Source: Tubulanus polymorphus (Eukaryota > Animalia > Nemertea). Taken from it: a DNA stretch of 64,000 bases. How positions within the stretch are numbered: position 1 is the first letter of the stretch; each line of letters opens with the position of its first letter. Shown here one piece after another: positions 3,101 to 63,677 of the stretch. The stretch covers positions 372,001 to 436,000 of the forward strand of contig NC_134036.1 in the NCBI RefSeq assembly GCF_964204645.1, given 5' to 3'. A program made the translations under genes and the position numbers. The notes below the pieces were generated by a model, which worked only from the letters and a program-made list of their open reading frames with translations, did no database searches and was not told the DNA's origin.

Positions 3101-6100
3101 GATGGCATCAGAAATGTGCGTAGCTATCCATACGAGCGTCAGTGAAATGGCTGAACGATTCTATACGGAACTGAAACGCCGATACTACACGACGCCGACC
3201 AGTTACCTCGAGTTAATCAATCTGTATTTATCGATGCTCGGCGAGAAGAAAAAAGAATTGATTTACGCGAGAGATCGAATAAAAAACGGTCTGCAAAAAC
3301 TACTGGAAACGAATGAACTAGTTGCCAGTATGGAGGTAAATATACACAGCTGTCAACTGTCTCAGATTGTGTCTCAGATTGTCACCCATGAGGGTGTTTT
3401 TTTATGGTATTGAAAAAAACTATTGTTGTTTCTGAAACTATTTTCTACTGTCTCTCTAAAAAATTGTTCTAACTCTTAAATTACTTTTTTCCCTGATGCA
3501 GTAATTGATGAGTTCGCCGGTCTGAATATAACATCAGCAACTTATACTGGATCAGTTCCATTAACTGAATATTATATTGATATAGTATTTTACTGTAGGG
3601 ATATAACATTGGAAATTATATGATTTTAACTCAACTGATATATACTCAGTTAAGAAGAAGATAAATGACCCTTTAATGTTTCTTTGAAGATGGGATTTAG
3701 AGATTTGTCTCAAAACTGTTAGAATGTAAGATATCATTGATTGTGGGATCATTGATCTTAACTCTTCATAATTGACCGACGCGTAGAACTGGCTCCTGGA
3801 TGCCTCATTAGTTAAACCATCTTTCATAAATATTGAAAAAGCTTCATAAACTTAAGTCTTGTCTTGTATTCCTGATAGAATATACTTCATTTGTGTTCCA
3901 CTTATTATCTCACCTTGCCTGTAATTAGTCTAATAACAAGAATTATTAATTTCTCATAATAAATACACTTCCTCTTATATTATAGGTTGAATTGGTAGCG
4001 TTGGAACCGGAGTTGAAAAAGAAATCGGCAGATACGGAAGCTTTGATGGAGAAACTGGTCGTAGATCAAGAGAAAGCAGACGCCGTTCGTAAAGTAGTGA
4101 AAGAAGATGAAGCGGTTGCTAAAGTAAAAGCTGAAGAAACTCAAGCGATCGCTGACGACGCTCAGAGAGATTTAGACGAAGCTCTACCCGCTCTAGAGGC
4201 GGCTATCAAGGTACTTACTGCTAAACTAATTAACCCCCTCCCTCCACAGTTGCCCCTGAGTGGAGACAGGTAACAGGTATATGTATCTTGCCCAGGGACA
4301 CTTAAGTTCAGGGGCTGCAGTTGCATAGTCATGGCTTAGACTTAAGACCAGTCTTAGTTCTATAGCCGATCTAACAACTTATGACCAGTCTTAAGATTTA
4401 AGTCCACTTATGGACTTAACGTCACAACTATGCAACTGGCCCCAGGGCTGCAGTTGCTCAAAAGATGATTAAAGATGATTTGATGGATAGATACTATAGT
4501 AATAATAAACTTTCAATCATCTCTTTGTAAACTATCCACTGGTTAACTCTAAACAACTTTTCAGCAACTGGCCCCAGGGTTCAAGCCCATGGTTGATACA
4601 TTCTAACCAACCATACCTCAATGAATTCAAAGTATTCAAAAGATAATAGTTTGTAGTTTTTAGTGTGGAATTTACATCTAATTGACGATATGACCTGTTT
4701 CTACAATGTAGATGATACCATTTTGTTCTGATAAATATGATATTGATATATCTGATTTCAGGCTTTGGACGCGCTGGATAAAAACGATATATCAGAGATC
4801 CGAGTGTTCAGTAAACCACCAGAACTCGTGCAGACCGTGATGGAAGCCGTCTGCGTGCTACTGAACTGTAAAACTGACTGGCAATCCGCCAAGGTCGTCC
4901 TCGGCGACAACAACTTCCTGAAGAAGCTGTACGAATACGATAAGGATAAGATTCCCGAATCGACTTTGAAGAAACTGAAAAAATACATCGAAAATCCGAA
5001 TTTCACGGTCGAGAAAGTGGAGAAAGTATCGAAGGCTTGTAAGTCGATGTGTATGTGGGTGAGAGCTATGGATTTATACGCGAGGGTTTTCAGGACGGTG
5101 CAGCCGAAACGCGACCGTCTCGCGGCGGCCGAGGTCGAACTCGAGTCTACGATGAGTTTACTGAGAGAGAAACAAGCGAAACTACAGGACGTCGAGGATC
5201 AGATCGCTACGTTACAGAAACAATACGACGACAGCGTCTCCGAGAAACAGAGACTCGTGAAGAACATCGGGCAGACACAGGGTCGATTGAAACGAGCTTC
5301 GAAACTGACGACGGCTCTCGCCGACGAGCAAGGTCGCTGGAAGGAAGGGGTCGAGAATTACGAGCGACAGATCGGGAATATAATCGGGGATGTGTTTATA
5401 GCGGCGGCGTGCGTCGCGTATTACGGAGCGTTTACGAGCACGTACAGAGAGGAACTCGTACACGGCTGGATCAAACACTGTCAGGATTTAGGAATCCCCG
5501 TCAGCGAGGGTATCTCTCTAATCTCGATACTCGGAGACCCGTTCGAGATACGTCAATGGAACACCGACGGGTTACCGCGCGATCAGGTATCCACGGAGAA
5601 CGCGATTCTCGTCACTAGGGGGCGTCGATGGCCGCTGATGATCGACCCGCAGGATCAAGCTAATCGTTGGATTCGTAATAAGGAACAACGAAACGGATTG
5701 AAATGTATAAAACTAACGGACGGAAATTTCCTGCGGACTCTGGAGAATTGTATCCGAATCGGAATGCCGGTTCTGCTCGAAGAGATCGGTGAATTCTTAG
5801 ATCCAGCCCTCGAGCCCATCTTACTCAAACAGACATTCTTATCGGTACGTTTACAAGACAATTTCAAATTTCTGCCGTTCGTTTAAGAGCAAAACTCACA
5901 TTGAAGTCTTCATAGTTAGGACGAGCATAATGATGACTTACATGTAGTAAATAGAATTTTTAGTAGAAATTGAGACTCAATGTTAGAGACAACATCATCA
6001 GGTTTTACTGTTGAACATTCTAAAATTGTGAAGACAAAAAACTGATCTAATTGAGAAATATTTCTAATTGATATTTTACAGGGAGGTCGATTGTTGATAC

Positions 6101-49022: not shown

Positions 49023-52000
49023 GGAGGAGGTGACCGGTTTATTTGGGAGACGCACCACGTGACGTTGAATAGGGTCGCCGGGTTTGGTTTCGGTATTGCG
49101 GTTAGCGGTGGTAAAGACAGTCCACACTTCACCAGCGGAGACCCTTCCATAGCTATATCCGATGTGCTAAAAGCCGGCCCGGCTGAAGGCAAACTACAGT
49201 AAGTCAAATCATCTTTATATTTGAAATTCATTAAATTGCGATTTTATCATAGGTTCACTGAACGGATCTTGTGGATTAGGGAATTCTGACTGTTATCGTG
49301 AAAATCAGGGAATTTGAATTTTTGGTGTCTATCTAGCTCTTGCTGGTGATGAGTGGCAAAAGGAACCTCCTAATAAGCAGAAACAGCCCTCACTGAGGGT
49401 ACCTTATAATCTAAACAGAGAATTCTTATTATTAATCACGAAATGTTTTAAATAATGAAATGTGTTTATTTTCTAGTATCAATGATCGTGTGATATCTGT
49501 GAATAACGTGCCTTTAGATAATGTCGACCACGCGTACGCTATCTCATTACTGAAAGAATCTGGAAACACCGTTAATTTAGTAAGTACAATCAAAGAAATA
49601 TCTTAAATCTTTGAGATTGAAAAGTGGGTTCTAAAACCGGGTTCTTATGTTATTCGCAGGTTGTTAGTAGGAAACTAATGATAGGAAACAATGAACCGAC
49701 TCCGGAACCAGTCAAAGTGACGTTAAACAAGAAAAATAAAAAAGATGGTAGGTTACTTGAAAAACTGAGAGAAATCCCACAATAGATTCAGCCAAAAATG
49801 AAAACTTCTATATTAAAATGATATCTATACATTTGAGCAATGTTTTTGCTAAATACTAATAGCCATCATCAGGTGTACTTTTCATTTTTGGCTGAATTCA
49901 TTATGGGATTTCTCACGTTATTCATCATACACGGATATTGTGTGCATCTTCTCGAGTGAAAAATCCCGAAAATTCACAATTTTTGAGTTTTAAATCTTGA
50001 ATCTTTTCCGTCGCTTAATTTCGAATCTGATTCTGATTTTTGTAGAATATGGAATCGTTCTCGGTTGTAAACTCTACGTCAAAGAGATCACGGGGAATAG
50101 TCTTGCCGCTCAGGACGGCGGACTAAAAGAGGGCGACACCGTACTGAAAATTAACAACGCAACAGCCGAGAATCTGTCGCTGACGGAAGCGATGAAAATC
50201 ATCGAGAAATCGAAGGATAAATTGAATTTGATGATTTCGAAATCGACGAAAACTTCGCCACTCGACATTAAACATAAAAAACAAAACAGTGAACCGACTA
50301 TAGATAGTGAGTAACTCAGCCACTAGAGGGCTCTTTATAATAATCATATCAATCTTCAATATGAAATATGTTAATGTCCTCTACATATCAATAAATACTT
50401 GTATTTAAAAAATGAATGCTTGTTATTTTCAGATTTCAATTTCCCGAAATCCGAAGCTCGACAATTCACGCCTAAACTCGATAACACGGAGAGGGGAGTC
50501 GGGAGAGCCGGTACGCAGTACGGTGCTGCCCCCTATGCCGATCGACATTATAACCAGACGTATGAAGCTAATTCAGATGGAGGCTCGGGGTCGCCGTACG
50601 AGGAACCCCCTCCACGTCCCCCGCTGCCGGATATGGATATAAAAGCTGGTACGTTTCATTGCATCCAATATCTGATCATATTCCGGGAATATCTTATCTG
50701 AAATGTTTGAAATATTCAAATCTTACAGAACCTCCGCCGAGGCCTCCGACTCCGGGCAAAGAAGCGTCTCATCCGGCGTACCGCGGTCATCCTAGTCACA
50801 TCGCAGCGCCATCTAGCTATAAATCGGTGAACAATAATGAACTACCAGCCCCGTCGGTTAGACAGCATAGCTTGTAAGTATTAATCCCTATCGAGTATAA
50901 ACAGTGTTCATCGCTCAAATTGAGTTTGAAATTAATTATTCTCATTCAGGATTCGTCAAATCAACTCCCCTTTCTGTAGGTAATGTATATAAATGTTTTA
51001 TGTGGCAATTTTGTGCATTTTTGCTCGGGTAATTTTTCCTGAAAAGAACGACGATTTGGCTTTTCTGCAAATCTTTTTTCGCTTTAAAATTCATCGAAAT
51101 TCTTTTGAAAATGGAATAAGCCTTTTGAGATATCTTTCTTGTTGATAAATGAAAGCAATTTAGAGCAGATGATTAAAGAGTTGCTATACATCACTGAGTT
51201 GTGTCTATTCACTGATGTAAACAGTATTTAGCATGATCTACCATTACGATATTTTATGGTCTTGAAATCCCTTTCACAGATGTGTCTCTTTCACCTCCAT
51301 CAGTTACCGGGTTGTCACAGAACTATATTGTATGTTCTCTATCATTAATCAGTTTTCACAAAATGCCTTTGGTTGAAGTTTGGTTTTTCTGGGCTCTGGT
51401 TCTCGGTAAAAACTAAAGATCATCAAAACAATATTTCTAATGTAACATTTTTTTGTCTCTTACAGTCCGGAACCTCGGCAGGTGTCTTTCTACAAAGAAG
51501 ATTCTAATGTTGGTATCAGACTCGCTGGTGGCAATGCTGTGGGTATTTATATAGCGACAGTACAGCCCGGTAGCCCAGCTCACGAACAGGGCTTGAAAGA
51601 GGGAGATTTATTGTTACAAGTAAGTCGAGTAGATTCTAACTCGGGAAACCTCCATCGCTACTGTAGCAATCGAGGATTCCACTTATGGCAAGCGAGGATC
51701 TCTTGTAGTTACTCAATCTTTTCTCTTATGAAATCCGCTCAATTCATCGTATTCAACATGCGTCTGTTTTCTGTTTAGGTGAATAATGTAGATATGAGAG
51801 GTAAAACTCGAGAAGAGGCCGTGCTGTTGTTACTGAGTTTAAATACACAAATAAACCTGATCGTTCAGCATCGTAGAGAGGATTACGATCGATATATTCA
51901 TAGCAGCGAGTTCGGTGATTCATTTTACATCAGGTAGGGGGCGCTAGCAATCAAGTGTGATTAAATACTATTTTTTGTAATGTGCTAAATGGATATTGTT

Positions 52001-55000
52001 TGAATTTTGTGCAGGACTCATTTCACGCACACGGATACTGAGAATGGTTTGATACAGTTCGGTATCGGAGATGTATTCCACGTTACTGATACATTACACA
52101 ACGGAGTTGTCGGCTCGTGGCAGGCTGTGAGAATAGGAGGCAATAATCAGGAAACACAAAAAGGAATCATTCCTAATAAAAACAGGTTCGTCGAAAAAAA
52201 ATGCTATCAAATACCATGATACATCACAGAAAAGATTTTGAAATGATTCCTTGAGCTAGACGTGTTTATTTGACTATATCCTAATTGTCATCTTCAGGAA
52301 TACTGTATTCCTTGAGCTAGTGTAGTTTATTCGACTATCCTGATCTTCAGGAATACTAGTGTTAAAGCAAAATAAGAGATTTATATGCAATCCAGAATAT
52401 AAAGAGACAAATTAGATAATTAAATATGATACAACCTTGGCCTGATATACAGCATAAGCATGTTCTCAACTGAAGTTGGATGGTTAGATTGATAAACTAT
52501 GTTTGAATTGTTTTTCTAGAGCGGAACAGTTGGCTCTTGCTCAACGTCAGAAAGCAAGTACGACCGAGGATAGCAAAGAGACTCAACCGAAACGCGGATT
52601 TTTCTTCAGAAGGAAGAGTGCCAGACGTACTAAGTCGTTGAGTAAAGAGCACTGGGAAGAGTTGATATTCTGTAAGTATCAGTACAGCGCCATCTAGATT
52701 TAAACTGTGTAATTAACAATGTTAGTAAAAGAGTGTTGTTGTAATTTTTGTGATTTAGCTAAATTCAATGGTGAGTTAGTGAACGCAGCCTTTCTCCTCC
52801 CTCCCTCCTCTATCTATATAGAGTTGCACTGCATGATATATCTTGAAGCTACGAACAAAATATGTATCAAATCATCTATTTCTGTAAAATATTTATCAAT
52901 ATTTCTTTCCTCTGGAGTGCTAGAGGGGATCAGTCTGTCTGGAGTGGTACTTAACTATCAGGGAGATCAGTCTGTCTAGAGTGCTTCTATCAGAGCTCAG
53001 TCTATCTGAAGTGCTAATATTAGGGGAACAGTCTATCTGAAGTGCTACTATTAGGGGAACAGTCTATCATGTAATATATTTCACCACTGTACTAGCTGCC
53101 TGTCTTACTAGCTACATTTCAGAACCTATCATCAAATATAGTTGATTCAATGCTCAAATATTCCAAAAACTTAATCACTTTCATTTAAAGACTACAATAC
53201 ATTCTGAACCTTGTGAATATTTATGTTGAATATTTTCTACTCTATTTTCAGCGAATCCAGTCTCGAAATTCCCTGCATATGAAAGAGTTTTATTACGACA
53301 AGGTATTGAATCTCACTGTCGCTAAAACCGTATGAAAAACTTCAAAATTAATTTCTCGAATAAAACAACTTGATCGCTGTTTCTAATTTTAGCGAATTTC
53401 GTGCGACCCGTTGTGATTTACGGAGCTATTGCCGATGTTGCCAGGGAACGATTATTAAAAACAAGTCCTAAATATATGTCTCCACGTAAGTGTTCACTGA
53501 TCACATTTGAATAATGAAAGGGTTTGCTGCAAAATAACAGAAACTGATGATGATGAATTCTAATGAACTGTTTATACTCGGTATTTCAGAAGCTGATCAG
53601 CAGGGTAATAACCCGGGTATCATAAAGCTAGGTTCCATTCGTGAGATAATGGACCTCGATCGTCACGCGTTACTAGACGTTACCCCTAACGCCGTGGATC
53701 GATTAAACTACGCCGGTTACTACCCGATCGTCGTTTATCTGAAGGCAGACGGAAAAAATATGATTAAAGAATTGAGGCATAAATTCGTGAAGGGTTCGCC
53801 GAAAAGTTCGAAGAAACTTTATGAGCAGTCGGTCAGATTGGAACAGGTTTACGGTCATTTATTTACTGGTAAGTTATATTGCTGGATCTGGTTCCAAAGT
53901 GTTGAGTGAACTCTCAAGTTAAATGATTCCAAATGATTAAAAAATGATTTTTAAAAATTTAATCAAGTTAAATGATTTTCAACGAGTTAACTCTTAACTT
54001 ACAAGGAACTGCATCATTGTTCCACAGACTGACTAAGATAAATCACAAAGTGTTCCATAGGAAAATTTGCAAATTATTGAGATATTTATTTTCTGTAGTT
54101 TAAATTCATCCCATTCTTGATTTAGAATTTCTTAAAAATTTTGTATTTTGTCATGAATTTCTAGGTGTTATTCCTTTGACTTCAACGAACGACGACTGGT
54201 TTGAAAAAGTGAAACAACTGATTGAAAACAGTCAAGGTCAGGCGATTTGGATGTCGGAAGACGATCAAATGGACGCGGCCAATCAGGATGACTTCCTGTT
54301 CCCGATGTCGACTACCGATCGTCATAGTTACGCGTCGTCGCCGGAGTCTGAGCTGGAATCTGCTGCGGCGTTGACGCTAAGACATCACAGCACGGCGACG
54401 CCCGGATCACCTCAATATCCGGCTTACGAGAGGAAGAAAATATCGAGGACAACTTCAGATCCGAGCTTAGCGACGAAAACCGCGGTAGCAAATCATCCAA
54501 TAGCTGATTATAGGAAGGTGCGTTAAACTGACTCTTAGTGGTGCCATCTGGTTGTATTTACCAGTATTCTATTAATAATGATCTGTTCTATTTTGATATT
54601 TATAGAGTGCGTATGAACCTGGTCAGTCGTACCCGTCGTCTCAAACACACCCGGCGTATTACGAACCCAACAATGATGACGTCTTCCAACGCGATCCGGC
54701 GAACGCGTTGCCTGGCGACCGGTATTACAACAATACGCAGTTCACACACCGCAGTTTACCTCGCGATGCGCGAGCTCAAATAGATCCGTACGCAACACTG
54801 ACACCTAGTGAGCGTTTACGGTACCAACAACAGACTAATGGTCAAGGTAAGGGAAGAATGAAAGATGGATGAATATTCTTATGAATTTCATCAAATTGTG
54901 ATATTTCTAATTCCGTGTCTGTTATTATTTTAGTTGATCCATATGGAATGACGTATCAACCTCCAGTTCCACCTAAACCTCAAATATCTTACAATTCATC

Positions 55001-58000
55001 TGCAGCAGCGGTATATCGTGTAGAGGGGCCCTCTAGCGGTGACTGGGAACAACGCACATTCGAAAATAAGGTAGGACATGTTTTCTCTATCAGAATGCGA
55101 CGAACAAGATGTTCATCAAAAAAAAAAAATTTCAATTTATTTCATATTTTGCATGATAAAGAAAGTAAGCATGAACACAGTAAACAATGGTTTGGAACTA
55201 TGAAACAGTAAACTCAGTATTTTCATCCTCAAAACCATGAAACTGATTTACGAAGATAGATATAATAGGGCATACAAGCATATTTTGATGATAGTTCTAC
55301 CTTGTGCAAGTCTTATTCGTGACACATATTTGGCTGGTGACGACCTACGTTTGATAACTGCTCAGGGGCCGGTTCCATAGTCAAGACTTAAGACCAAAAG
55401 TGGTCTTAAATCTTAAGAATGATCTTAAGTTGTTAGATTGGCTATAGAACTAAGTTTGTCTTAGACCGGTCTTAAGTCTATGGAACCGGACCCAGTAGTG
55501 TACTGTGTTCAGTTTATTTCTGCATGATTTCCTCAAACTGAGGCGTTTTTATTTAATTTTCGATTCTAGATGAACGCTGAAACTCACAGTTCCAGCAGCG
55601 ATTCTTACTCTAAATACACGTCGAACCCTGCGAATAAACACGATGATTCGAAACTACGCGAGAAATTCGGCATGATTCCCGGAATTCCACCACCTCCTCC
55701 GAATCGTAACACGTCATCGGGGGATGCGTATAAATACACTCGTAGTACGGCTAATCCGTATAACCGCGTAAATCGGTCGAACGTCGATAAAGCGAAGTTG
55801 AACGATTTGAGTCGGCCGTTGGTCGCGCCGAAACCGGCTTCGAGATCGAAGTCTGAATCGACTCTCGATCCGGTTCGACCGGACCCATCTTTAAAACCGT
55901 TCTTAACGGCGCCGTCGATGTTTCCGGACGACGATTCTAAATTAAAACAGCGCAGTATGCCTGACATCGATAGATACAACGCGATGAGATATACAGAGCC
56001 ACCTGGTGGTCATACAGCCAGGTAAGATTCATTCGACTTCACGCATTATTTCACAATTTCTAAATGAAGGAAGTCAATTTGAATGACATTGATGTGTTTT
56101 ACCTATTTGTAGACAAGATGATAGTGGAAGGTCCTATGATAATGACTCCTATATGGACCCTTACAATCGGCAAATCTCCAGAGCCAGGTAATTATTCGAC
56201 TATTCAATGTTTGTAGATGTGGTCTGTTCTGTTCTGTTCTGTCTTCTAATATCAGTGTAAATGTGAACTTTAGGGCTCGCAGCGCCGGAGAGACGACCTC
56301 TGATACGCATCAAGGTCGTATACGCCATAGTTTCGGTTCGCATCAACCCGCCACCAGGGCGGCGTTGTACGGTGATAATAGGCGTCATAGTTACTCGAAT
56401 AGGTACCTGACTCTAACAGTAGTTTAGTCTGCTATGGGAAATAATATTTATGATATATCAACCCTTGAAAAGCTTTAGAAACTAAAACTCATTATACTCT
56501 ACTCTAATGACTAGCTATGATATATTTCTGTAATACAATATTCTTTCTGAGTTGGTGCTGAATATTGGCATACCCCTGTATCATACTATCTCACTGTACG
56601 CTTTTAGTATTAACCTTTGCATAATTCTGGGTTAGAGATGCAAACTTTCATTTGCTAGTTCCACTCCAGGTCAACAGCATTTTTCTAAGCTAACCTGGGG
56701 CCAGTTACTCAAAGGTTTGTTTGGTGGACAAATACCATGGTTATGATGTGAATTCATTTGTCACTATGTCAACTATCCACTGGTTAACTCTAACTAACTT
56801 CTTTTGGTTAAATCTGCAGCCTCTGACCATTAAACCCATATCTATTATGTCTACAAGACACATCTTTGTAGATTAAGAAAAATTATTTCTAAAACTATTT
56901 AATCAAAAGGAAATTAATACTCTACAATGATTCGAATTTTGACTATAACCATGTTTATCATTTGTTCAGGTCTGCGTCACGAGAACGTTTACCAATAGAT
57001 GGCGCTCCGCCTAAACCGGTATCGCATCACGATATGAAGGATATGGATGATCTGAATGGACAGACGGTGGTCGCGACGGCTCAGGGCATGTTCGATTATA
57101 ACGGAGGGGTCCTCGAATCTAGAGAAACTGGTAAGATTTATATACTTCACCTAAATTCTGAAATTGTTCATTGATTTGACGAGAATGATTTAGTATGGTA
57201 TTGTTGTTATTTTGTAGGAGTCAGTATTCACATACCTAAAGGTGCTATACCACGCGGTGTAAATCAAGAGGTTTACTTTAAAGTTTGTCAGGATAATAAC
57301 ATTTTACCTCCACTCGATAAAACTAAAGGTATGAATTACATTAATTTCAACGATTGATTTATCAATTAAAAATCGGATCATAACTTCATTCGTAAATTAT
57401 CTACAAACCCATGAAGAGGGAGTGTACAAAAAATCGTCCACTTCTTCCTACATTGGAACCATGTTACAGCAAACTTCAAGGGACCAGAAAATCCCAGTTT
57501 CACAAAAAAGTTTGATTCAAATTTCTGATGTAATCGCCATTGATTACTTCGTATTTTCAATGAGGACAACAATTAATAACCGTTTTAGGCTTAAATTTTT
57601 TTCGTGAGACTGGTTCGTTATAACCAATAATATCAAATTTTTCTTATTTTGGACGAAATTCTATACTTGTTGTATCCGATGAACCGTTGTATCTGAGTTC
57701 GTTATAACAAGGTTCCACTGTATTAACTTATTGGTTGGTATTCCTTAATTCATGCGGGTTAACAAAATCTGCAGCAACCTTACCATAAAACTCAAATCTA
57801 TTTTATTTAATTCCTATGACCATGCCTACTTAATCGATGACCCCTACCTTTCTATCTTTAATCATATCTTCCTTTATTTTCAGGTGAAACCCTTTTGAGT
57901 CCGCTCGTGATGTGTGGTCCGCACGGACTGCAATTCAAACAGCCCGTAGAGTTAAGGTTACCGCATTGCGCCTCGATGAATCCCGACAGTTGGTCATTTT

Positions 58001-58131
58001 CCCTGAAATCAAGCGACTCACCGACCGGTCAACCGACGCACTGGAAAAACATGACCCTCGCCGGTATCGACGGCGTAGCTCAAGGTCGCGTGGAGAAAAA
58101 CAGCGTCGTCGTAATGGTCGATCATTTTTGA
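49023..58131 (+). CDS. TJP1: Tight junction protein ZO-1 / polychaetoid-like MAGUK, constant exons (PDZ1-PDZ2-PDZ3-SH3-GuK-Pro-rich-ZU5)
   Basis: Exons: 49023-49198, 49477-49579, 49660-49747, 50046-50306, 50433-50648, 50729-50873, 51466-51619, 51779-51933, 52015-52185, 52520-52671, 53252-53302, 53393-53485, 53590-53868, 54165-54517, 54606-54846, 54934-55070, 55570-56021, 56113-56187, 56274-56402, 56970-57130, 57218-57328, 57884-58131. PDZ1 [25 protein letters not shown]; PDZ3 [13 protein letters not shown]; SH3 [13 protein letters not shown]; Gu[17 protein letters not shown]; ZU5 [12 protein letters not shown]; C-terminus VMVDHF*. Confidence 0.94.
52912..53068. repeat. Degenerate roughly 30-bp tandem repeat (gtgct..tattaggggaacagtctatctgaa)
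   Basis: About 5 imperfect units in a ZO-1 intron. Confidence 0.7.
55366..55492. mobile_element. MITE family A copy with intact TIRs and a CAG target-site duplication
   Basis: cag|gggccggttccatag...ctatggaaccggacc|cag. Confidence 0.8.
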
Positions 58132-59369
58132 AACTCGACCGATGATAATGTGATGCATTTATCGCCAAATTTAAAAAGAGGATAGAATTTGGATAAAGTG
58201 ACTGATAAGATTTGACAATTGGGAAAAACTTTGAGATCATGAAACCAAAATAAACGTGTAAAAAATGTGTACGATGAACTATAAATAGCCCTTTACTGTA
58301 CATAGTTTACAGGTGAACCCTGAAAATGGAGGGATCTGTAATCAGTTTATGTATAAGATTTTTTCTACTTGTTAAATCTAAATTCCGAGTCTTACTTATT
58401 ATTGTTATTCCATTTGAAAATAAAAAACATATCAACTTCTATTTATTAGGAATTCTATCTGGTTGAAGTGAAGCATTTATTGATTAATTTCAATAAACTT
58501 AGAGACTTCAAATGATATAGAATTCATACCTAATTAAAAGTGATTTAATTCTGGTCTCTCTTTGTGTTTTGTAATATTTCAGTTGAAATGTATATTATTA
58601 ATATATAATTATTTAAGCTAATAATAAAGTTATCAATTAATATTAAATTTGAGTTTAATTTGTACTGGTTTCGTCCCCTCAGAAGTGATCAGTAGACAAC
58701 AGTCTGTATTTCTAAAATAAATAGAACTTTTTTATTCAACAAAAACAAAAGAAACAGAACACGCAAAAAGACATTTAACATTTTGTACTCAAACAATCTG
58801 CATAAGGTATTTCCTTATCATAGAACTCATTTACAGAATGTTTTTACCTGGAACTCTTGAAAAACAGTTAACTTTAAAACAGTAATATTCAAATAATATA
58901 ATCTCTTGAGATTGATTGCACAAATTGATACTAGATACACAGTCTGCATACAGTATTTTGTATTAACTTAACAATAGTAAAGACACTTTTAACAGAATGT
59001 ATTCTCTTAAATTGTGATAAACCACTTTATATAATATGTGATGAATAACATTAACAGTGATAATAATATTGCATAATAGAGATTAAACACAATCAAATAT
59101 AAAGTAAAACTATCATTTGAATAATCGCTCTCTCTTGAAGAAAAAAATTACTTGTTCAAAATGATACATAGAGCCTCAATGGATACTCGGGGGCAACTCC
59201 TATATAATAGATGAAATCTTTAAACTACATATGAAAACTTCAACTGAAAATATATGTTGATTGCACAAGATTGTAGGAGACCACGAACAAATTAACAATA
59301 ACAATTACGAGGAGAAAGGGAGAGATTGACACTATATAACAATACTTCATGAAATAACAGTTATTGAAG

Positions 59370-62300
59370 TTACACAGAATGTTTGGTTTTTTTATGGTAA
59401 TATAGACCAGCGCGTTGAGTGAATGATTGATCACATAAATCACAATGATATGGCTTTTCACCACTGTGCAGTTTCATATGTGTCTGTAGATTACTACTCC
59501 GAGTAAATCTCATACCGCATATACTACATACATATGGCTTTTCGCCTGTGTGTATTCTCATATGTGTCTGAAGATTACCGCTATCGTTGTATGATTTATC
59601 ACATATTGAACATCTATATGGCTTCTCTCCACTGTGAATTCTAAAGTGTCTCTTTAAATTACCATTGTGAGTGAAAGTTTTTCCACATACATTACACTCA
59701 AACTGTTTTATCCCTGTATGGACACTAATGTGTGTCTGTAAATTACCATTGTGAGTGAAAGTTTTTCCACATACATTACACTCAAACTGTTTTATCCCTG
59801 TATGGACACTAATGTGTCTTCTCAGATCGGCGGCTCTACTAAATGTCTTACTACAAACTCCACATGTTTTTTGTTGTTCATCAGTTTTTTGCAGTTTAAT
59901 GTAAATTTGATCGGCTACTTTACGAACCTCGGCGGGGTCGGCGTCCGGGTGTTTCCGACGGATGTGTTCCATCAGTGTATTGGCCGTACTCAACGCTGGC
60001 CAGATGCAAAACGGACAACGATATTTATCGGCTAGAAAAAGAAAAACATCAATTTAGACTCTTTATTTGAGGCAAAATTGAGAAAATTGGATGAATTAAT
60101 TGGTACCTTGAACCGGTGAAATGTTGAGTGTCGAAGATTTGATTTCGCCGAGCGGTTTAATTTCCATATTCTTGGGTCGATTTTTCGAGATGATTTTCAT
60201 CGTTGTTTTCACGGTTTTATCGCGTGACGATTTCCCCCAAGCTTTCGATTTACAGTCGATACCGATTTCCTTCGCGTAATCTTCGCCGTACCAAACCAAC
60301 AGTTCACGACCTTTAAAACAATTTCATACGAAAAATGATTCTTTTCGATCTTAAAATGATAATGTTATCTATTTTAATGGTATAGATAGAATCTAATGAT
60401 TCTAGCTGATGACGAAATGGCAGATTATCGCGAAGAAACTTTTCCTACCGGGATTAATGTGTTTGATAGTTCTATAGTAGATTTCTCCGTTATATTGAAA
60501 CGCTTCTAGATTCTGTTCTTCCTCGTTTCGCGCGCAATTCACAAATCTCATCCAGTTTGATAAACTCACGTCACTGGCATCGATGAAATGATGTGGTTTA
60601 CCGTCTCGACAAATCTGTAAAATAACGAGGTAAAACTGCGCATGAATCACGAGAGACAAGTAAGATGTAAATCCCACAATCACGAGATCGAAAAAGTTAT
60701 TTAAAAGATTTTTTTCGAAATTTTTTGAAAACCCAAAATTTCGGAAACCCAAATTTTCGGTTTGATGCTAAAAACCATTTTCAAGGAATGAACTTGGGAT
60801 TTACATTTTAAATCTGTAAAATACAAATTCAAAATTCTCACCTAAGTTCAGTAAACCCTGCACATCATTGAGACCAATGAAAATAATCCATGTCAACAAA
60901 ACCCACTCAATAATCTGGTAAACTATTTGAAATCATGGATCTTGATTTTACTTACGAGCCAGGCGTAACCAGATTTATGAACCTCCATTTCGTCGTAGCG
61001 TGATCGCAGTTCTCCTTCGTACGGTCCGAATCTAAGACCAGTTAACAGCAGTTTATCGGTAAACACACCTCTTCCAGCTCGCGGTATTTTCGATTTCTTC
61101 ACCATTAAACCGTCGGGTACCGTCTCAAACGCTCTATCGGGTTTTCCCTTCGGCACCTGTGAAATAAATTCAATCTCTTCTTCATTTCTTGTTTCTATTT
61201 TCAAATGATTTTGAAAAATCTCTTCATACAAATTACTTTCGAGTCGTTGATTATGATGAATTTTCCGTGTTCCTCGCAACCATCCAGATATTCTTGATTA
61301 CAAATTTCACAAACTAAAAAATATTCCACAAATGAACAATATGACGCTGGGATCAGGGAGATCAAAGGGGTTGATCTCTGAACACTTACATATAAACTTG
61401 TCATCCTCGGGCATTTCTAGTTCGGAATAATTTTTGCGCGCGATGTTACGTTGCGGCCGGTTTGATATTGGTTCCGTCTCATACAGTTCACAAAGGGGAA
61501 GCTGAAAATAAATTTGGTTACAATTCAATTGACTCCATACCCAAACTAGATGCCGTATTAGATATAAAACTCACTTGAACTCTGGGTCGTTTAGTCTGAG
61601 GTGCCGGTTTATGTTGCCCTAGAATTGAAGACAATCCCATTAATAATCCCTTCAGATATTGCAGTAGTCACGAGGTGTCTATTTTGCTCTTACTGGGCGG
61701 CACGAGGGGTTTGAAAATGTTAGCCATCGGTTCTGGTTTAGGCTTCGCGTTCCACTCCTTGTCGGGATCATCTTCTTCGTCGTCTTCTTCGACAGTTCTT
61801 CTTTTTTCTTTCTTGTAACGTTTCAGCATGAAATCAGGTTTTCTGGCCGGAATTCCTGGAATCATATTTAGAATTCATTTTAAAAGTTATTTATGGCCCG
61901 TATCCAAGCCTTGCAACTAGACCAGTTTGAATAGATTCATTTAAATCTAGACAATTTTCTTAAAGAGTTTGGGGTATCCTTCACTGATGAGTAGGATCAC
62001 AGCTTATAGAGCACTGAGACTGGAGACTGTCGACACCATTTCTAGAACTGCATGAAGGAACTTGAGTCGACTCAATATCAACTCTGGCCAGTCAGCTTTT
62101 CATCTTTTGATCTTAAAATAGGGATTGACCCTGTGATTTATTTGATTGGTAAATTTCGTTTGATTTTTTGATTTGGTGTCCCTTACAAACCCACCACACC
62201 TGCCGGGAAAGAAACAGGGGGTTTGATTTTGAAATCGGAAATCGAAGTACAAATATAGTTGTGTGATCGGCGGTCGAGTTCACAGAATTTTTTGTTTAAA

Positions 62301-63677
62301 TCGAAGTACATAATTTGAAATTTTCGGTTCCGGTTCATTCTAACAATCTTAGCCACTGGACATAGGGCACAAGCCAACTCAATTAGTTTGTCTCAGTGAC
62401 TGGACACAAGGCACAAGCCAGCTCAATTAGTTAGTCTCAGTGGCTGGACACAAGGCACAAGCCAGCTCAATTAGTTTGTCTCAGTGACTGGACACAGGAC
62501 ACAAGCCAGCTCAATTAGTTTGTCTCAGTGACTGGACACAAGGCACAAGCCAGCTCAATTAGTTAGTCTCAGTGGCTGGACACAAGGCACAAGCCAGCTC
62601 AATTAGTTTGTCTCAGTGACTGGACACAGGACACAAGCCAGCTCAATTAGTTTGTCTCAGTGACTGGAGACAGGGGCACAAGCCACCTCAATGAGTTTGT
62701 CTCAGTGACTGGGCACAGGGCACAAGCCACATCAATTAGTTTGTCTCAGTGGCTGGACACAGGTCACAAGCCACCTCAATTAGTTTGTCTCAGTCACTGG
62801 ACACAGGGGACAAGCTAGCTCAATTAGTTTGTCTCAGTGGCTGGACACAGGGCACAAGCCAGCTCAATTAGTTTGTCTCAGTGGCTGGACACAAGGCACA
62901 AGCCACTTCAATGAGTTTGTCTCAGTGACTGGAGACAGGGGCACAAGCCTCCTCAATTATTTTGTCTCAGTGACTGGACACAGGGCACAAGCCACTTCAA
63001 TTAGTTTGTCTCAGTGACTGGACACAGGTCACAAGCCACCTCAATTAGTTTGTCTCAGTGACTGGACACAGGGGCACAAGCCACCTCAATTACTTTGTCT
63101 CAGTGACTGGGCACAGGGCACAAGCCACCTCAATTAGTTTGTCTCAGTGACTGGACATAAGGCACAAGCCACCTCAATGAGTTTGTCTCAGTGACTGGGC
63201 ACAGGGCACAAGCCACATCAATTAGTTTGTCTCAGTGGCTGGACACAGGTCACAAGCCACCTCAATTAGTTTGTCTCAGTGACTGGGCACAGGGCACAAG
63301 CCAGCTCAATTAGTTTGTCTCAGTAATCATGGGTTGAGCTTCACTGAAATAAGAACATTAGTCAGAACGACACAAGGACTATAGAGCCTGATGGATGCTT
63401 CAAGAACTGTGTGAACTGCACATCCCCTGCTATAGTGATAAAACATTGATGAGGAATTGTTTGCATTGTCGTTACCTAAACATTTCAGCATTTCATAATT
63501 CCGACGAACGTTTCCCAAATGAAGTCTTTCGTACGCGCCGATTTTCTTCCATTCGGTTTCCGTGAAAAATTCCTCGATCGTCAAATTTTCCACTTCCTCT
63601 AACTTTGCTTTATCGACCCCTGGGAAACCGTCAATCGTCTCTCCCGAACCACTACCGGCGCTACTGATATCGGCGCG
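59370..63677 (-). CDS. PRDM9: PRDM9-like histone methyltransferase (KRAB-SSXRD-Zn knuckle-PR/SET-proximal ZF-6x C2H2 array); start codon not located, probably beyond the window
   Basis: Exons (minus strand): 63476-63677 (KRAB: IEEFFTETEWKKIGAYERLHLGNVRRNYEML), 61694-61855 (GIPARKPDFM...DDPDKEW), 61575-61618, 61390-61501 (SSXRD: RPQRNIARKNYSELEMPEDDKF), 61237-61313 (CEIC...CEEH knuckle), 60956-61156 (FGPYEG), 60449-60614 (NWMRFVNCARNEEEQNL...IYYRT), 60107-60310 (ELLVWYGEDY), 59370-60031 (CPFC..H..H plus six tandem C2H2 fingers). All junctions are phase-compatible. Confidence 0.9.
62354..63325. repeat. 44-bp minisatellite, about 22 copies, in the PRDM9 intron between the KRAB exons
   Basis: Unit gtctcagtgactggacacagggcacaagccagctcaattagttt; no unique spacers. 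Confidence 0.97.

Follow-up and report, generated by a model that had tools for sequence, protein, structure and literature searches.

A probable single-copy PRDM9 orthologue with an apparently old, unhomogenised zinc-finger array in the nemertean Tubulanus polymorphus

PRDM9 places meiotic recombination hotspots in mammals. The mammalian genes (human and mouse; structures 4IJD, 6NM4 and 4C1Q) share with the T. polymorphus locus described here the order of their modules and a C2H2 array carried by the terminal exon. In mammals, however, that array is a near-identical minisatellite, whereas T. polymorphus has six dissimilar fingers whose diversity is not concentrated at the contact residues. 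Furthermore, the KRAB and SSXRD modules of T. polymorphus fall below Pfam thresholds.

Complete PRDM9 genes have also been described in invertebrates: in the sea urchin (Birtle and Ponting 2006, cited in Oliver 2009), in Nematostella, Lottia and Capitella (Oliver 2009, PMC2779102), in termites in 2025 (PMC12047536), and in 2026 in 28 cnidarians, in which ZCWPW1/2 co-occur with them (bioRxiv 10.64898/2026.09.07.749791). The novelty that an earlier sequence-only reading of this DNA had implied for a complete invertebrate PRDM9 was therefore overstated, and the T. polymorphus gene, taken alone, is an expected orthologue. It resembles the published invertebrate genes in its complete KRAB-SSXRD-SET-ZF architecture and its conserved catalytic tyrosines. 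In most of these publications the emphasis is on fingers that evolve in concert or are diverse at their contact sites, whereas the T. polymorphus array shows neither property. We found no paper joining PRDM9 and Nemertea in the literature searched.

Within the phylum, two proteins of the ribbon worm Lineus longissimus are called PRDM9-like in RefSeq: XP_064647498.1 (here P0028) and P0154. Their architecture is collinear with that of the T. polymorphus gene, of which exons 2, 3 and 5-9 all match P0028. The Lineus genes are recently duplicated paralogues on different chromosomes, in contrast to the one gene of T. polymorphus, and each has nine fingers instead of six. The identity between the SET core exon of T. 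polymorphus and P0028 is only 64%. The gene neighbourhoods differ and are uninformative as to synteny: Zwilch adjoins one of the Lineus copies, and a ZO/TJP-like gene neighbours the T. polymorphus gene.

Gene model and N-terminal modules

The gene lies on the minus strand at positions 59370-63677 of the window (the whole stretch of 64,000 nucleotides that was analysed), where it had been placed earlier (Table 1). The nine exons found in the window, exons 2-10, join into an open frame of 609 codons; all of their borders are AG/GT, and their phases are compatible. The modules follow each other as a KRAB-A-like box, SSXRD, zinc knuckle, PR/SET domain, one post-SET finger and six C2H2 fingers, so that the sequence-only reading was right to claim an ordered set of modules across phase-compatible exons. 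Exon 4, which also has AG/GT borders, is the sole phase-compatible bridge from exon 3 to exon 5; no homologous sequence backs it independently. Exon 10 is the terminal coding exon and carries the whole array: Pfam recognizes six zf-C2H2 fingers in it, and a single post-SET finger (CPFC...H....H) stands at its start. No further C2H2 array was found anywhere in the window. The joined protein model was used for the frame check, the local profile alignment and the tree.

Table 1. Exons and other features of the T. polymorphus PRDM9 gene, in window positions
Feature	Position	Strand	Content	Basis
Exon 2	63677-63476	-	N-terminal linker and ancestral KRAB-A-like box (...EEFFTETEWKKIGAYERLHLGNVRRNYEMLKC)	
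Exon 3	61855-61694	-	KRAB-related region continued (PARKPDFM...), acidic stretch to DPDKEW	
Exon 4	61618-61575	-	Short basic linker, 14 whole codons	Splice phase only
Exon 5	61501-61390	-	SSXRD motif (RPQRNIARKNYSELEMPEDDKFI)	
Exon 6	61313-61237	-	Pre-SET zinc knuckle C-x2-C-x7-C-x2-H (CEICNQEYLDGCEEHG)	
Exon 7	61156-60956	-	First part of PR/SET: AGRGVF, FGPYEG	
Exon 8	60614-60449	-	SET core: NWMRFVNCARNEEEQN, IYYRT	
Exon 9	60310-60107	-	SET end (ELLVWYG) and linker	
Exon 10	60031-59370	-	Post-SET finger (CPFC...HIRRKH), spacer, six tandem C2H2 fingers, stop	
Stop codon TAA	59372-59370	-	End of exon 10	
Recent finger duplication, in register, 84 bp	59643..59810	-	81/84 bases identical	
Stretch with half-depth variant contig	59586..59689	-		Sole public DNA run

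Because exon 2 contains no in-frame ATG upstream of the KRAB box, the start codon must be located further upstream. An ATG within the window, at about 63760, was rejected because its phase does not fit exon 2. The best candidate for the first coding exon is a predicted 15-base exon at 64120-64106, just beyond the window. The 300 bases upstream of this predicted start have a G+C content of 0.49 and an observed/expected CpG ratio of 1.42, and resemble a CpG-rich promoter. Within the explanation that we favour, the whole coding region very probably comprises ten exons, nine of them inside the window, and would encode ~614 residues.

That the first coding exon is a prediction and that exon 4 is placed by splicing phase would also be compatible with a locus that does not work, being either an unexpressed relic or two adjoining genes, one with the N-terminal KRAB/SSXRD modules and one of SET-ZF type, which stand in order only by coincidence. 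We consider this highly improbable: none of the nine exons is interrupted, their splice sites are canonical and their phases match; the same collinear order occurs in dozens of annotated single proteins from other animals; the sequence before the predicted start is promoter-like; and the sole heterozygous change in the non-finger coding exons, seen in one DNA run, is synonymous.

The N-terminal modules were searched for with a profile built from the N-terminal halves of 29 other PRDM9 proteins, from which the T. polymorphus sequence was left out. Of the 2847 open frames in the window, this profile matches exactly seven, which are collinear and all lie on the minus strand. Their E values range between 1e-3 and 9e-31, and that of the frame ranked next is 0.33. 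We judge such an ordered series of matches to be far beyond chance. Exon 2 matches profile positions 8-52 (E 1e-8), and the stretches that Pfam calls KRAB in vertebrate proteins correspond to positions 10-48. Exon 3 continues at positions 48-84 (E 1.8e-4) and aligns with PKPAFM...DSDEDWTPK of the vertebrates. Exon 5 occupies positions 166-196 (E 1.3e-3), compared with 163-190 for the vertebrate stretches called SSXRD by Pfam, and is aligned by BLAST with some 20 PRDM9-like proteins at the expected place; a PDB search with this exon gave chance matches only (E 0.35). Weak when taken alone, the SSXRD match appears convincing through its position and order. The zinc knuckle of exon 6 (CEIC...C..H) matches positions 190-219 (E 5.7e-6), and this exon also has a weak match to Pfam Zn_ribbon_PRDM4 (E 0.0099).

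The Pfam models themselves, KRAB (PF01352) and SSXRD (PF09514), gave no match at E<=1 on the PRDM9 exons. They likewise gave no match on ten invertebrate PRDM9-like proteins tested, which points to a limit of the models and not to a difference specific to this gene. Both modules are thus identified through homology to PRDM9 proteins instead of curated models: a scan of the kind suggested earlier with KRAB and SSXRD models is negative with Pfam and positive with the homologue-built profile, which places exons 2 and 5 at the KRAB and SSXRD positions of the vertebrate proteins.

PR/SET domain and family assignment

In a residue alignment to the solved human and mouse PRDM9 structures (6NM4, 4IJD and 4C1Q), the equivalents of Y276, C321, Y341 and Y357 are all intact in T. 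polymorphus, as they are in the mammalian proteins. Y276 corresponds to the tyrosine of FGPYEG in exon 7 (codon 61021-61019), C321 to the cysteine of VNC in exon 8 (60536-60534), Y341 to the second tyrosine of IYYRT in exon 8 (60476-60474), and Y357 to the tyrosine of LLVWYG in exon 9 (60290-60288). The four motifs quoted in the earlier reading are therefore all present.

Each of the three SET exons has PRDM9 as its best match in the PDB. The E values are 1e-9 for exon 7, compared with 2e-5 for MECOM, and 3.7e-15 for exon 8, compared with 4.6e-11 for PRDM12. Exon 9 matches PRDM9 at 0.017 and then PRDM14 at 0.59, and no other family at E<=10. Pfam PRDM2_PR matches exon 7 as well as exon 8 (1e-25 in the latter), and the PRDM9 N-terminal profile extends into exon 7 (E 2e-22) and exon 9 (E 3e-8). 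An exhaustive search with exon 8 recovered 1540 relatives, among which proteins named PRDM9-like ranked highest. The closest proteins are the PRDM9-like proteins of Lineus, a chiton, scallop, mussel, limpet, annelid, urchins and amphioxus. In a reciprocal check, the next-best SET exons of the genome had PRDM1 and PRDM14 as their best matches, and thus the 268-Mb genome contains one PRDM9-type locus only.

A tree was computed from the zinc knuckle and SET domain of 41 proteins, all of them PRDM9-like, so that the assignment to the family stands on the best matches and the N-terminal modules. The tree recovers the major animal clades, with the deeper forks unsettled, and groups the T. polymorphus protein weakly with the Lineus pair. 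The branch leading to T. polymorphus is long (0.83, compared with a median of 0.19), and may reflect relaxed or changed constraint. With SET exons that match PRDM9 best, ordered profile matches and PRDM1 and PRDM14 as the genomic runners-up, the earlier identification of a PRDM9 orthologue of complete architecture is upheld. We conclude that the locus is very probably the single, intact PRDM9 orthologue of this nemertean, for which a mechanism of action can be proposed from its family.

Zinc-finger array

The six fingers are 49-81% identical to one another at the DNA level, with a median of 62%. Third codon positions are near saturation, at 46% identity, and the fingers thus do not show concerted evolution. 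The share of amino-acid diversity that falls on the contact positions -1, 2, 3 and 6 is 0.18, where a uniform spread would give 0.14. Among 79 homologue arrays, which have a median of 0.39, this value falls in the lowest 9%. Published shares for full-length PRDM9 are 0.33-1.0 in vertebrates and 0.29-1.0 in cnidarians, and those for truncated copies that do not direct hotspots are 0.158-0.524 (bioRxiv 10.64898/2026.09.07.749791). The T. polymorphus share is consequently under every quoted full-length vertebrate or cnidarian value and inside the range of the truncated copies. As judged from these measures, the fingers are old, have diverged from one another and show no homogenisation.

The two Lineus arrays behave differently: their median finger DNA identities (94% and 84%) indicate homogenisation, and their contact-site shares are 0.64 and 0.34. 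Shares close to that of T. polymorphus (0.20-0.22), together with high per-site diversity, are found in PRDM9-like proteins of amphioxus and barnacles (P0119/P0153, P0156, P0157 and P0193), and at least one of them, P0119 of amphioxus, is in addition similar to the KRAB, SSXRD and knuckle exons of T. polymorphus. These proteins, however, come from distant phyla, where they are members of multi-copy families. Partial vertebrate PRDM9, such as that of swordtail fish, which is without KRAB and SSXRD, likewise has a slow, unhomogenised array, and the T. polymorphus share lies within its range. N-terminal domains or catalytic residues are missing from these vertebrate copies, whereas T. polymorphus keeps them all.

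The array is nevertheless not frozen. It contains a recent in-register duplication of a finger (Table 1), in which all three differences alter the protein, at helix positions +5, +6 and +8. A variant finger contig, probably the second haplotype, differs at five places; in finger 3 it has T instead of R at contact position +6, and in the linker V instead of E. A paralogous source was rejected because there is no second copy in the assembly, and a misplaced copy of another finger was rejected because the next best fit is 77/104. The recent duplication and the probable haplotype change at +6 count against a stable array.

An old and diverged array is what an ordinary transcription factor would have, and the gene could be a PRDM9 orthologue that never positioned recombination, or no longer does so, and acts, in the germline or outside it, as a conventional sequence-specific regulator of chromatin or transcription with fixed finger specificity. 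The long SET branch agrees with this reading. A further point in its favour is that the first description of mouse Prdm9 (Meisetz) reportedly presented it as a transcription regulator of meiosis. For old truncated cnidarian paralogues, the gain of another function has been proposed (bioRxiv 10.64898/2026.09.07.749791). According to the same study, however, slow finger arrays in vertebrates accompany the loss of KRAB/SSXRD or of catalytic residues, and T. polymorphus keeps KRAB, SSXRD and all of the catalytic residues. Such retention suggests selection on the whole set of recombination-type modules, and we regard the conventional regulator as a somewhat doubtful explanation.

Readers of the double mark and the question of hotspots

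The earlier reading had suggested looking for ZCWPW1 and ZCWPW2, and genes like both are present in the genome, each with zf-CW followed by PWWP on one strand. The ZCWPW1-like gene (G000:C26, about 61439-62430) has ZCWPW1 as its best PDB match (4.7e-11), and the ZCWPW2-like gene (G000:C10, 1297136-1298150) has ZCWPW2 (1.2e-12). Being divided between exons, the PWWP parts have weak scores. TEX15-type DUF3715 also occurs in the genome. In vertebrates, ZCWPW1 and ZCWPW2 are lost together with PRDM9 (PMC8892340). The retention of both readers in T. polymorphus is a further argument against a conventional regulator.

In the mechanism that its family makes most likely, the protein would bind a DNA motif through its finger array in germ cells, and its PR/SET domain would trimethylate both H3K4 and H3K36 of neighbouring nucleosomes. 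Partners would be recruited by the KRAB/SSXRD end, and the ZCWPW1-like and ZCWPW2-like proteins would read the double mark. As the fingers appear old, diverged and not homogenised, the marked sites should be stable over time instead of quickly turning over. That these sites are recombination hotspots is possible, although we would place it short of probable. The proposal of the sequence-only reading that this animal may have PRDM9-directed hotspots is thus favoured by the complete modules and the presence of the readers, and disfavoured by the contact-site share and the finger identities.

A system of the mammalian type, in which PRDM9 designates double-strand-break hotspots away from promoters and a fast-evolving array runs a Red Queen race against the erosion of the sites that it binds, would fit the full domain set with its intact catalytic residues, the two reader genes, the recent finger duplication changed at +5 and +6, and the probable allelic change at +6; the Lineus arrays show that the pattern occurs in the phylum. 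It is unlikely for T. polymorphus, in which the array has only six fingers, shows no concerted evolution, and has a contact-site share near that of a uniform spread and below all published full-length values. More tentatively, and in our estimate quite improbably, T. polymorphus could be an exception to the rule derived from vertebrates that fast-evolving fingers accompany every complete PRDM9, namely a gene with KRAB, SSXRD, an active-looking SET domain and both ZCWPW readers in its genome, yet with an ancient, unhomogenised array and, if it still positions meiotic breaks, stable, motif-specified hotspots.

The gene adds a data point from Nemertea, in a second lineage besides Lineus, for a complete PRDM9 module set older than the vertebrates. 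It also sets up a contrast within one phylum, between the duplicated genes of Lineus with homogenised nine-finger arrays and a T. polymorphus gene with full equipment and six old, dissimilar fingers. Such a pair could test whether hotspots are predicted by domain completeness alone or by the behaviour of the finger array. Should breaks still be positioned by PRDM9 in T. polymorphus, the gene would either have escaped the hotspot paradox or represent a stage at which the Red Queen race had not yet begun.

Gene structure and identity of the modules

The PRDM9 gene lies on the minus strand (63677-59370) of a 268-Mb assembly of 77 contigs. Its nine exons (exons 2-10; Table), joined from the window's open frames, give 609 open codons and a TAA stop in a local frame check, with AG at all acceptors, GT at all donors and compatible phases. 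Exon 2 contains no in-frame ATG 5' of the KRAB box; just outside the window, GTAAGA is preceded by an ATG and four further codons, a stretch that is in phase with exon 2 and would be the first coding exon. The 300 bases 5' of it are CpG-rich (GC 0.49, CpG o/e 1.42).

The Pfam models for KRAB and SSXRD gave no match at E<=1 on these exons, nor any in ten invertebrate proteins named PRDM9-like, and the modules were therefore identified through relatives. Exhaustive searching with exon 8 as the query yielded 1540 proteins; the best full-length ones bear the names PRDM9-like or PRDM7_9 and come from Lineus longissimus, Liolophura, Pecten, Mytilus, Lottia, Owenia, sea urchins and amphioxus. A word search with the Lineus protein added vertebrate PRDM9 proteins that Pfam recognizes: the KRAB model matches a turtle and three cartilaginous fishes, and the SSXRD model exceeds its threshold in the turtle. 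A profile of the N-terminal halves of 29 PRDM9 relatives, excluding the window sequence, matched seven of the window's 2847 open frames, all in the PRDM9 gene and in order (Table). Since the Pfam-called vertebrate KRAB and SSXRD stretches occupy profile positions 10-48 and 163-190, respectively, exon 2 can be assigned with confidence, by profile position, to an ancestral KRAB-A-like box, and exon 5, a weak match taken alone, is probably the SSXRD, as its place and order fit. The module order across phase-compatible exons claimed in the sequence-only reading is borne out, with KRAB and SSXRD visible to the relatives' profile and not to Pfam.

Exons 7 and 8 match PRDM2_PR/SET (Pfam), and exon 6 weakly matches the PRDM zinc knuckle. 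When the SET exons were searched one by one against all solved structures, PRDM9 ranked first for exon 7 (1e-9; MECOM 2e-5) and exon 8 (3.7e-15; PRDM12 4.6e-11); exon 9 matched PRDM9 (0.017) and PRDM14 (0.59), with other families absent at E<=10. The alignments place FGPYEG, VNC, IYYRT and LLVWYG at human Y276, C321, Y341 and Y357, so that these residues, earlier read as intact, are confirmed. With the 4IJD chain start, which we take to be residue 195, C321 is Cys and Y341 is Tyr, and the numbering fits.

Features of the PRDM9 gene and its surroundings, with matches to the N-terminal profile
Feature	Position	Strand	Profile positions	E value
Putative first coding exon	64120-64106
Exon 2	63677-63476	minus	8-52	1e-8
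Exon 3	61855-61694	minus	48-84	2e-4
Exon 4	61618-61575	minus
Exon 5	61501-61390	minus	166-196	1.3e-3
Exon 6	61313-61237	minus	190-219	6e-6
Exon 7	61156-60956	minus	218-286	2e-22
Exon 8	60614-60449	minus	283-340	9e-31
Exon 9	60310-60107	minus	338-365	3e-8
Exon 10	60031-59370	minus
Finger duplication (84 bp)	59643-59810
Half-depth contig	59586-59689
Dispersed repeat, intron 2	62098-62348
Satellite, intron 2	62355-63324
Variant path, intron 5	61307-61421
High-depth stretch, intron 7	60613-60814
16-bp tandem, intron 7	60729-60760
Convergent neighbour	about 51400-58150	plus
ZU5-like exon of neighbour	57895-58131	plus
Long open exon	4756-5883	plus

Orthology and pathway partners

When the whole genome was searched in six frames with exon 8, the sole high-identity locus was this gene, and the next three loci (46-54% identical) best match PRDM1 and PRDM14, which indicates a single PRDM9-type gene. 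A maximum-likelihood tree of the knuckle and SET of 41 PRDM9-like proteins, which is no test of family membership because other PRDM families were not included, recovers urchins, vertebrates, molluscs and amphioxus as clades, with deeper forks not settled. The T. polymorphus gene, on a long end branch (0.83 vs a median of 0.19), forms a weak group (SH-aLRT 84; inner forks not settled) with two tick proteins and the Lineus pair, itself a recent duplication.

We consider it very probable that the gene is a true PRDM9 orthologue, complete and apparently intact. The original paper on the sea-urchin ancestral KRAB is reportedly that of Birtle and Ponting in 2006. Complete invertebrate PRDM9 is already known, and the present gene adds one more member: a sea-urchin orthologue has the ancestral KRAB (PMC8835667), full-length PRDM9 was inferred in two termites in 2025 (PMC12047536), and a 2026 preprint (bioRxiv 10.64898/2026.09.07.749791) reports it in every one of the 28 cnidarians it examined. 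Oliver et al. (2009; PMC2779102) relied on the KRAB-SET-ZF architecture as confirmation of orthology; they described fingers undergoing concerted evolution in Nematostella, Lottia and Capitella, and a male-gonad EST for Lottia PRDM9. In Lineus, RefSeq names two proteins PRDM9-like; no paper on PRDM9 and Nemertea together was found in the literature searched.

The suggested check for ZCWPW1/ZCWPW2 gave two genes with zf-CW then PWWP on one strand, with ZCWPW1 (contig C26, about 61439-62430, plus strand; 4.7e-11) and ZCWPW2 (contig C10, 1297136-1298150, minus strand; 1.2e-12) as best PDB matches. Both are candidates for reading the PRDM9 double mark. The zf-CW domain also occurs at a third locus, a MORC gene, and a TEX15-type DUF3715 was found as well. 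ZCWPW1/2 accompany PRDM9 in cnidarians (bioRxiv 10.64898/2026.09.07.749791) and, according to PMC8892340, are lost together with it in vertebrates.

Introns and neighbouring sequence

The dispersed repeat of intron 2 (about 250 bp) has >2500 candidate copies genome-wide on first look, many 90-99% identical, and very high DNA-run depth; it resembles a young SINE or MITE. Beside it lies a tandem satellite (44-bp unit, 265-bp higher-order unit, 22 copies, 91% matches). One further array is on contig C6 and nearly all others are on contig C12, that of the window (about 481-482, 585-586, 629 and 917-925 kb), so the satellite is seemingly enriched on that chromosome. In intron 7, a stretch at 10-20 times the local depth is probably another moderately repeated element. 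The half-depth variant path in the DNA run (three substitutions and a 2-bp deletion) affects intron 5, save for a single change, a synonymous one, in the final codon of exon 5, and is consistent with a heterozygous individual.

The convergent neighbour has PDZ-like, guanylate-kinase-like and ZU5-like exons and, judged from open-frame translations alone, resembles a tight-junction scaffold gene of the ZO/TJP type. The 376-aa open exon appears, as read by eye, to resemble dynein heavy chain.

Evolution of the zinc-finger array

Exon 10 encodes the post-SET finger, followed by a tandem array of six C2H2 fingers. Pairwise DNA identity among the five regular fingers is 49-81% (median 62%), and 46% of third codon positions are identical. 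The share of amino-acid diversity at the contact positions (-1, 2, 3 and 6) amounts to 0.18, whereas uniformly spread diversity would give 0.14; the median over 79 homologue arrays is 0.39, placing this array in the lowest 9%. The value falls below the published ranges for full-length PRDM9 of vertebrates (0.33-1.0) and cnidarians (0.29-1.0), and inside that of truncated vertebrate copies (0.158-0.524; bioRxiv 10.64898/2026.09.07.749791). By this comparison the array resembles that of a zinc-finger protein that evolves slowly.

There are two hints to the contrary. One is an in-register duplication, 81/84 identical, in which all three differences alter the protein (+5, +6 and +8). The other is a half-depth contig in the sole public DNA run, with five changes, among them R to T at +6 of finger 3 and E to V in the linker. 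The assembly contains no second copy, and the variant is probably the other haplotype, although contigs from one run are not proof.

The earlier suggestion of PRDM9-directed hotspots stands as a possibility; given the contact-site share and finger identity, the fast-turnover form known from mammals is not favoured and seems unlikely. That the gene has any role in placing recombination is less improbable, but still doubtful.

The two Lineus genes (OU343005.1 and OU343007.1), on separate chromosomes and sharing 85% identity across their first 400 residues, have homogenized arrays of nine fingers each, whereas the six fingers of T. polymorphus are old and non-homogenized. The pair is unequally homogenized (94% DNA identity with a contact-site share of 0.64, vs 84% with 0.34), and looks like a recent duplication with one copy ageing. 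A complete module set combined with an old, non-homogenized array, beside a relative of the same phylum with a fast array, is the point worth following.
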